Positions 94 through 162 of a stretch of 64,000 bases of DNA are shown piece after piece. The notes under the pieces were generated by a model. That model saw only the letters and a program-made list of their open reading frames with translations. It ran no database searches and was not told the origin of the DNA. The stretch's first letter is position 1. Each line of letters opens with the position of its first letter. A program made the position numbers and the translations under genes. Location of the stretch: positions 151,331-215,330 of the IMG/VR virus record IMGVR_UViG_3300044997_001199; one strand, written 5' to 3'.

Positions 94-97
94 AGTG

Positions 98-148
98 TTC
101 TCCTTGGTTAAGCAAGAATAAGTCGAGATCCCCGGAATGGGCAATCTC
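98..148 (-). promoter_or_regulatory. ROSE-like RNA thermometer in the dnaK 5' UTR
   Basis: Minus strand UUCUU-G-CUU-AACC-AAG-GAGAA hairpin (118->98) pairs the SD with a UUGCU motif and a bulged G; a second hairpin GAGAU..CCC/GGG..AUCUC lies at 125-148. Confidence 0.6.
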
Positions 149-154
149 TAGTGC

Positions 155-162
155 TATTTATA
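155..162 (-). promoter_or_regulatory. T4-type late promoter TATAAATA upstream of dnaK
   Basis: Plus strand TATTTATA at 155-162 is the exact T4 late consensus on the minus strand. Confidence 0.65.

Follow-up and report, generated by a model that had tools for sequence, protein, structure and literature searches.

In bacteria, ROSE elements are known from the leaders of small heat-shock genes, of a few virulence genes and, as ROSE-like elements, of ABC transporter genes (PMC11342760). A leader of comparable layout in front of the dnaK gene of a phage raises the question of whether a virus keeps its own Hsp70 chaperone under translational control and, if so, which signal releases it. The initial annotation of this locus proposed a ROSE-like RNA thermometer behind a T4-type late promoter, so that Hsp70 would be made late in infection and only when warm. 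This interpretation is partly supported by the present analysis: it is right in kind, it overstates the timing and the temperature response, and it is incomplete without a further copy of the leader, overlooked at the time, on the neighbouring hsp20, which is the ordinary target of ROSE elements.

The dnaK leader and its promoter

The virus record is a single contig of 215,330 bp with a G+C content of 49.5% and a CheckV completeness of 61%, and the DNA runs that contain it are lake-water metagenomes. The phage is tailed and encodes a T4-like replication set (tail sheath, gp32-like SSB, UvsX, gp43-type polymerase, gp44 clamp loader and helicase). A megablast search with the start of the window, that is, of the whole stretch of 64,000 nucleotides that was analysed, found no GenBank phage close at the DNA level. 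The gene behind the leader is a phage dnaK as proposed, the record holding a DnaK ORF of 620 aa, and it stands in a gene order, S21 > DnaK > Hsp20 > ClpS, that is kept in more than 80 viral loci. The features of the locus and the Clp genes of the record are as follows.

Window 1..93, minus strand: first 31 codons of dnaK; the full gene (620 aa) extends past the left end of the window
Window 91..93, minus strand: start codon ATG of dnaK
Window 99..105, minus strand: Shine-Dalgarno (SD) block AAGGAGA, which pairs with 110-117 and is separated from the ATG by four bases
Window 105-98, minus strand: AAGGAGAA
Window 106..109, minus strand: loop AACC
Window 110..117, minus strand: anti-SD block UCUUGCUU, including the ROSE motif UUGCU (115-111) and G113
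Window 118-110, minus strand: UUCUUGCUU
Between hairpin 1 and the anti-SD block, minus strand: short U-rich linker
Window 125..148, minus strand: hairpin 1, with a 6-bp lower stem GAGAUU/GAUCUC, an unpaired G142 and inner CC/GG pairs
Window 155..162, minus strand: late promoter motif TATAAATA
Window 180..185, minus strand: TTGACT, a sigma70-type -35 hexamer, 17 bp upstream of TATAAA and 3 nt after the rpsU stop
Window 190-188, minus strand: rpsU stop codon
Window 188..412, minus strand: gene of the phage ribosomal protein bS21 (Pfam PF01165, E 4.8e-18), directly upstream of the dnaK leader
Window 405-1613: ClpX
Record 148,693-148,998: ClpS
Record 134,283-134,897: ClpP
Record 92,419-94,695: ClpA-like protein, with ATAAATA 17 nt before its start

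The Clp protease set of the phage is complete, besides DnaK and Hsp20, and the bS21 gene overlaps the end of clpX. Between hsp20 and clpS (record about 149,000-149,060, minus strand) lies a perfect inverted repeat of 12 bp, rich in G+C; it is terminator-like and has no clear U-run, and an Rfam search there returned an RmaA match at chance level only. Six or seven tRNA genes are clustered elsewhere in the window, at 47278-51254 on the plus strand (Leu-CAA, Met twice, Arg-TCT, Leu-TAA and Gly-TCC, with one more match, at 49250-49311, found by Rfam only).

All the letters that had been described for the dnaK leader are present on the minus strand. ROSE-like thermometers have 2-4 hairpins in the 5' UTR of a heat-shock gene, with the SD in the last one. 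Here, similarly, the stretch from the promoter motif to the ATG of dnaK contains two hairpins, of which the last holds the SD sequence, UUGCU (window 115-111) facing AGGAG (104-100). The composition of the AACC loop is found only in this dnaK copy among the leaders listed, and it permits G113 to pair with C106. Hairpin 1 is predicted to lie at or near the 5' end of the mRNA, because transcription would start a few bases past the NATAAATA promoter; read-through from the bS21 gene would also transcribe the leader. No RNA run was found to contain the DNA of this phage, and mapping of RNA from four lake metatranscriptomes at 80% likeness gave zero depth on the dnaK and hsp20 leaders, and the matches obtained were conserved dnaK coding pieces of other organisms only.

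The promoter motif TATAAATA occurs once in the window, where 0.78 occurrences are expected, and six times in the record. The motif NATAAATA (ATAAATA) is enriched ahead of genes: of 258 crude gene starts, 22 have it in the 100 nt on their upstream side, about 1.6 being expected, and 20 of its 38 copies fall in the intergenic 10% of the record; the genes behind it include tail-fibre-like and virion genes. It is found 60-90 nt before the ATG in 97 of 99 dnaK leaders, with hairpin 1 usually starting 3-5 nt past it. NATAAATA is the reported late promoter of T4-like cyanophages, and the late promoters TATAAATA / NATAAATA of T4 and the Kyanoviridae are read by gp55 with gp33 and gp45 (PMC2984593). 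The promoter described here is like these in its motif, in its place a few bases before the predicted transcript start and in its enrichment before structural genes, and relatives encode a gp55-like sigma (an ORF of this kind is present in three of five relatives' records, a complete one of 329 kb included), but it differs in the consensus -35 hexamer that the dnaK leader adds 17 bp upstream. In the record itself, at 61% completeness, gp55 and gp45 (phrog_234 and phrog_223) were not found, and tblastn with T4 gp55, gp45, gp62, RegA and gp47 returned a gp44 homolog only.

The same -35 hexamer, at 17-18 bp, occurs in seven dnaK and eight hsp20 leaders of one subclade, and this phage has such a -35 on both leaders; in many relatives hsp20 is driven from TTGACA-N17-TATAAT instead. 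A scan for the sigma70 consensus (TTGACA, 16-18 bp, TATAAT) did not report TTGACT-17-TATAAA of the dnaK leader, because its -10 has no T at position 6. The proposed T4-type late promoter thus stands as far as NATAAATA acts as a promoter motif in this phage and relatives carry the corresponding sigma, but expression that is late only is not established, because a sigma70-type -35 lies 17 bp upstream of TATAAATA. The site is best read as a promoter of late type, with host sigma70 as a possible additional user.

Seven or more genes have NATAAATA just 5-8 nt upstream of the ATG and lack a Shine-Dalgarno sequence, for instance at window 3099-3106 (minus strand) before ORF 1610-3091 and at record positions 37658, 81054/81074, 88697, 90807 and 105285. 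These genes may give rise to leaderless or near-leaderless late mRNAs.

Recurrence of the leader in this phage and its relatives

Taken on its own, the sequence of the dnaK leader does not rise above chance, either in the energy of its fold or in the frequency of its motifs. For the 75-nt leader the z-score of folding is -1.5, with 19 of 200 shuffles folding equally well, and TATAAATA is no more frequent than chance, all of which would fit a chance resemblance in a leader without function. Against this stands the recurrence of the leader. A covariance model, R2, which was built only from other contigs, was searched over all 215 kb up to E = 10 and matched exactly three sites, namely the dnaK leader (43 bits, E 7e-8), the hsp20 leader (38.4 bits, E 1e-6) and a site before a 73-aa ORF (26.7 bits, E 1e-3). 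With three copies in one record, and with conservation and covariation in over 250 leaders, a chance resemblance is scarcely credible.

The hsp20 copy (record 149,495-149,560, minus strand) is located in the 63-nt spacer between dnaK and the adjacent IbpA-like hsp20 and consists, in order, of TTGACA, 18 nt, TATAAATA, a hairpin, CUUGCUUAA, AAGGAGA and the ATG. Its hairpin 1 has the same GCC...GGG core, and its stem letters differ from those of the dnaK copy yet still pair, which amounts to compensatory change. CTTGCTTAA occurs just twice in the record, once in the dnaK leader and once in that of hsp20. The third copy (record 138,538-138,610, minus strand) has AATAAATA upstream and a CUCGCU variant of the motif, and the 73-aa ORF behind it has no Pfam match. 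One relative (L009, 9418-9487) carries the same leader before another 73-aa ORF; no similarity between these two leader-bearing ORFs of two phages was detectable, and neither matches Pfam.

Protein-guided scans of IMG/VR recovered 80 dnaK loci (68-77% identity) and 80 hsp20 loci, and nearly all the unique upstream regions of these viral loci carry the same leader. A second covariance model, R1, built from 54 non-redundant leaders, matches the start of dnaK in 117 of about 130 viral loci and the start of hsp20 in 142 of 148, and the dnaK loci that it misses are three-hairpin variants still showing the anti-SD/SD block. In all, the leader is conserved across more than 100 phage contigs, in over 250 leaders. 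It also precedes groES in two related phage lineages (L013:1914-1978 and L035:3065-3126), and its targets of known function are all chaperone genes, that is, dnaK, hsp20 and groES. Isolated T4-like phages that have no dnaK carry it before hsp20, with scores of 54.5 bits in Melnitz, 28.6 in S-PM2, 21.5 in HTVC008M and 19.5 in C48C1. The leaders of these isolated Kyanoviridae (L256:1435-1500 in Melnitz, L258:1439-1503 in S-PM2, L257:1427-1503 in HTVC008M and L259:1427-1497 in C48C1) are mostly found behind NATAAATA. The leader thus occurs in an abundant aquatic phage group that includes the cultured models Melnitz, S-PM2 and HTVC008M, which makes it directly testable.

Comparison of related leaders, which had been suggested as a check, bears out the first hairpin. 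Among 114 distinct aligned leaders both sides change in seven of the nine pairs of helix 1, with two-sided changes in 225 cells against 83 +/- 7 in shuffles, and 83% of its cells are paired, a share that falls to 59-63% when the partners are slid by one column; the alignment was fitted to the model and therefore leans towards structure. Hairpin 1 is G+C-rich at its top and leads into a U-rich stretch (AUUCUUGCUU), and in many relatives the hsp20 leader starts right past the dnaK stop with no promoter of its own, so that the hairpin and U-rich stretch might be taken, above all in the hsp20 copy, for a leaky intrinsic terminator or a processing site to which the SD pairing is incidental. However, a terminator scan reports nothing at either leader, the U-run is interrupted, promoter-proximal leaders and bacterial ibpA mRNAs begin with the same hairpin, and the conserved anti-SD block would be left unexplained. 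A terminator or processing site is on these grounds very improbable.

Helix 2 cannot covary, because one of its arms is the SD sequence, and its analysis was therefore anchored on motifs. The blocks so found, U-CUUGCU-U in the anti-SD arm and A-AGGAG-A in the SD arm, comprise exactly the seven paired positions of helix 2 plus the bulge, the paired positions of the SD block being invariant and conservation dropping immediately outside, though part of this signal is built in, as three of the six anti-SD positions are set by the pattern used for anchoring. Homologous leaders that lacked the UUGCU/SD pairing would have spoken against the proposed element, and a [C/U]U[U/C][G/A]CU motif was located in 192 of 197. 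About 83% of the located motifs are U(U/C)GCU proper and about 17% UUACU. By variant, CUUGCU makes up about 70%, CUUACU about 17% and CUCGCU 4-7%. The last of these turns the U.G wobble into a C-G pair, the U/C variation facing a G in agreement with the ROSE consensus U(U/C)GCU (PMC3669281, PMC11342760), and in CUUACU an A replaces the bulged G, which counts against reading the leader as a ROSE thermometer. That the phage dnaK has a conserved, SD-sequestering leader of ROSE type can be held with high confidence. For the study of RNA thermometers, the relatives provide more than 250 natural variants of one short thermometer, among them G-to-A changes at the bulge position and widely differing hairpin stabilities.

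Kinship with ROSE elements and possible origin

The Rfam ROSE models, which had been named as a further check, gave no match on the dnaK leader even at E<=10. At the same threshold RF00435 and ROSE_2 found no match either, both for window 1-1200 and for the dnaK-hsp20 region. The hsp20 leader, in turn, matches Rfam ROSE_3 (RF02523) over its full length with 35.7 bits (E 5e-5), and ROSE_3 also matches the hsp20 leaders of the relatives L004 (33.6 bits) and L008 (28.7 bits), of the isolated Methylophilales phage Melnitz (34.1 bits) and of the isolated phage C48C1 (26.8 bits), all short of the 43 bits that the gathering cut-off requires; on the phage leaders none of the Rfam ROSE families attains its cut-off. 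In its published form, the Pseudomonas ibpA type is a UTR of 61-62 nt with two hairpins, the second of which holds the SD imperfectly paired with U(U/C)GCU while the AUG is free (PMC3669281). To judge from their sequences, the phage leaders appear to have all the features of this definition. The ROSE-type anatomy claimed for the dnaK leader is supported in this sense: the leader is homologous to the short ibpA-type leaders, and its paralog on hsp20 matches ROSE_3.

Like the Pseudomonas ibpA element (RF02523), the phage leaders are 5' UTRs of about 60 nt with two hairpins, of which hairpin I has a lower stem, one unpaired G and GCC...GGG pairs, while in hairpin II the SD is imperfectly paired to U(U/C)GCU and the AUG stays free. 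They differ in scoring 27-36 bits against the cut-off of 43, with the dnaK copy unmatched, in being driven from NATAAATA or a sigma70-like promoter rather than by sigma32, and in being carried by phages, on genes that include dnaK, groES and an ORF of unknown function. With the classical forms (RF00435 of Bradyrhizobium and other rhizobia, and ROSE_2 of E. coli ibpA) the phage leaders have in common the UUGCU/SD helix and, in the bulged register, a G that bulges out between a U.G wobble and a C-G pair, a geometry seen in the oppF crystal structure (PMC11342760). The classical forms are longer, however, with three or four hairpins, and the phage leaders have no Rfam match to them; furthermore, the dnaK copy of the window is predicted to be more stable in a register without the bulge.

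The closest bacterial DnaKs found are betaproteobacterial, mostly from Burkholderiales and chiefly from Oxalobacteraceae, with 67-74% identity. A ROSE leader on dnaK rather than hsp20 had been expected to be unusual, and it is: a ROSE-type leader is absent from all 80 of the closest bacterial dnaK loci found, each taken with 2.5-kb flanks. A neighbour-joining tree places 69 phage DnaKs together in a single clade, apart from 74 bacterial ones, the tree being rough, midpoint-rooted and without an outgroup. The ibpA-like genes of one Janthinobacterium and one Noviherbaspirillum (Oxalobacteraceae) have a sigma32-type promoter (CTTGAAA...CC.TAT) followed by a two-hairpin leader with the same hairpin-1 core (GGAUGCUC...GAGGUCC), then UCGCU, AGGAU and the ATG. 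With filters off, R1 finds both of these leaders as the best site of their locus, though weakly (E about 0.03), and an Rfam search of the two loci gave no match. Searches of whole betaproteobacterial genomes with R1 and RF02523 gave no match either, and as control genomes were equally silent this is uninformative either way.

A sigma32-dependent promoter, as at Pseudomonas ibpA, is not present at the dnaK leader, which has TATAAATA with the TTGACT -35 instead. CTTGCTT within the leader was considered as a sigma32 -35 and rejected, no CCCCAT-type -10 following it and a transcript from there losing the start codon. The leader may have come with an ibpA-type gene and then lost its sigma32 promoter, to be copied in a large freshwater lineage onto dnaK, groES and the small ORF. 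On sequence grounds it is read as a real ROSE-type leader that was transferred onto phage chaperone genes.

Cis-acting RNA structures that control the translation of a phage gene have precedents. Lambda cIII is a phage-linked RNA thermometer. A fourU element before blyA of prophage SPbeta is cited as a further example (PMC11342760). These resemble the phage dnaK leader in that mode of action, but their structures and genes are unrelated to it. Full-text literature searches, with incomplete coverage of journals, turned up no account of phages with a ROSE-type element, whether ahead of their dnaK or hsp20 or elsewhere, and papers on phage sHsps, bS21 phages and DnaK-encoding 'moraphages' do not mention one. 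Here viruses carry a ROSE-type device behind viral promoters and appear to have copied it onto dnaK and groES, genes on which the closest bacteria found have no such leader. This points to a virus-owned translational control of chaperone supply, which may respond to temperature or to folding load.

Predicted folding and modes of control

Two registers are predicted for hairpin 2 of the dnaK copy, and the SD is hidden in both. In the first, C116 pairs with G100, U115 with A101 and U114 with G102 as a wobble, G113 is bulged, and C112, U111 and U110 pair with G103, A104 and A105; its energy of -5.0 kcal/mol at 20 °C weakens to -2.2 kcal/mol at 37 °C. In the second, which ViennaRNA prefers, UUCUUG (118-113) pairs with CAAGGA (106-101) with no bulge, at -6.1 kcal/mol at 20 °C and -3.5 kcal/mol at 37 °C. 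The pairing of the SD with UUGCU around one bulged G, on which the ROSE assignment had been based, can therefore form but is not the predicted optimum of this copy. The non-bulged register is possible in this copy only because its loop carries CC, and in most homologs the minimum-energy fold is the bulged register. In the minimum-energy fold of a short construct UUGCUUA is paired with codons 2-3 (UGAGCAA), and this was rejected as a conserved structure, because hsp20 leaders have no such pairing.

It is proposed that the leader is a short two-hairpin 5' UTR of ROSE type that would serve as a portable cassette on chaperone genes in this phage lineage. Transcription would start a few bases past the late-type promoter NATAAATA, which here also has a sigma70 -35, and hairpin 2 would pair UCUUGCUU with AAGGAGA and so hide the ribosome-binding site. 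Being only marginally stable, with a predicted energy near -5 to -6 kcal/mol at 20 °C that weakens to between -2 and -3.5 kcal/mol at 37 °C, hairpin 2 would open like a zipper on warming and DnaK would be translated, and the copies before hsp20 and the 73-aa ORF would respond together with that of dnaK. A working zipper-type thermometer is the moderately probable reading of the dnaK leader; confidence stays at this level because the temperature behaviour is a prediction, because the hsp20 copy is predicted to be far weaker and because occlusion of the SD is unexceptional genome-wide. The mean unpaired probability of the SD in the dnaK copy is predicted to rise from 0.16 at 4 °C to 0.25 at 37 °C, 0.33 at 42 °C and 0.5 at 50 °C, so that the hairpin would stay closed at lake temperatures and until well above 30 °C, which counts against a thermometer. 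Hairpin 2 of the hsp20 copy is predicted to be barely stable, which likewise counts against it. By SD occlusion dnaK ranks 6th and hsp20 41st of 69 genes of the genome, and this ranking is therefore not discriminating.

The gradual opening predicted for the dnaK hairpin between 4 and 42 °C, together with the SDs of other genes in the record that are equally or more occluded, would also suit a constitutive translational attenuator combined with an mRNA-stabilising 5' structure, in which hairpin 1 protects the 5' end, hairpin 2 fixes a low rate of initiation and physiological temperatures elicit no response. A fixed attenuator has no need of the exact ROSE motif, however, and it would not be expected to stay confined to chaperone genes in more than 100 phages or to be homologous to ibpA thermometers, which renders this explanation rather improbable.

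A different signal is suggested by E. coli IbpA, which represses its own translation via its ROSE-type 5' UTR until aggregates titrate it (PMC10474464; bioRxiv 10.1101/2020.04.20.050740), and for which Arg93 is essential for binding to the 5' UTR (PMC10474464). By analogy, the leader could be a chaperone-feedback operator, instead of or besides a thermometer: free phage Hsp20 would bind the shared 5' UTR and repress hsp20, dnaK, groES and the 73-aa ORF, and aggregating proteins would titrate Hsp20 and release the mRNAs. The phage system resembles IbpA self-repression in gamma-proteobacteria (PMC10474464) in that a ROSE-type leader stands before an IbpA-like sHsp that keeps the equivalent of Arg93, but differs in that the leader is common to dnaK and other genes, and binding by the phage protein is suggested by analogy. 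The aligned Arg is kept in the Hsp20s of this phage, Melnitz, S-PM2 and HTVC008M, and IbpB, which is without the activity, has Gln; this Arg nevertheless lies in a stretch that is conserved across the compared sHsps, and its presence is therefore only permissive. That several chaperone genes in one phage share one leader, and that heat shock is rare in cold lake water, also speak for feedback. Both the repression by free Hsp20 and its relief by aggregates are tentative suggestions, to be considered possible but unlikely, and the thermometer and Hsp20 feedback are not exclusive of each other. An equally speculative extension of the analogy makes the shared leader the operator of a phage proteostasis regulon in which Hsp20 is titrated by misfolding virion proteins. 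If this were true, chaperone output would track the folding load of late infection and not the temperature of the water, possibly acting together with the phage bS21 encoded just upstream.

The leaders of dnaK and hsp20 within one contig also tend to agree in the base at the bulge position. Among the contigs L002-L161 there are 44 pairs with G in both leaders, 14 with A in both and two discordant ones. The agreement is in keeping with the feedback operator but may be simple shared ancestry; a clade effect, gene conversion or a trans-acting constraint common to both leaders could account for it.
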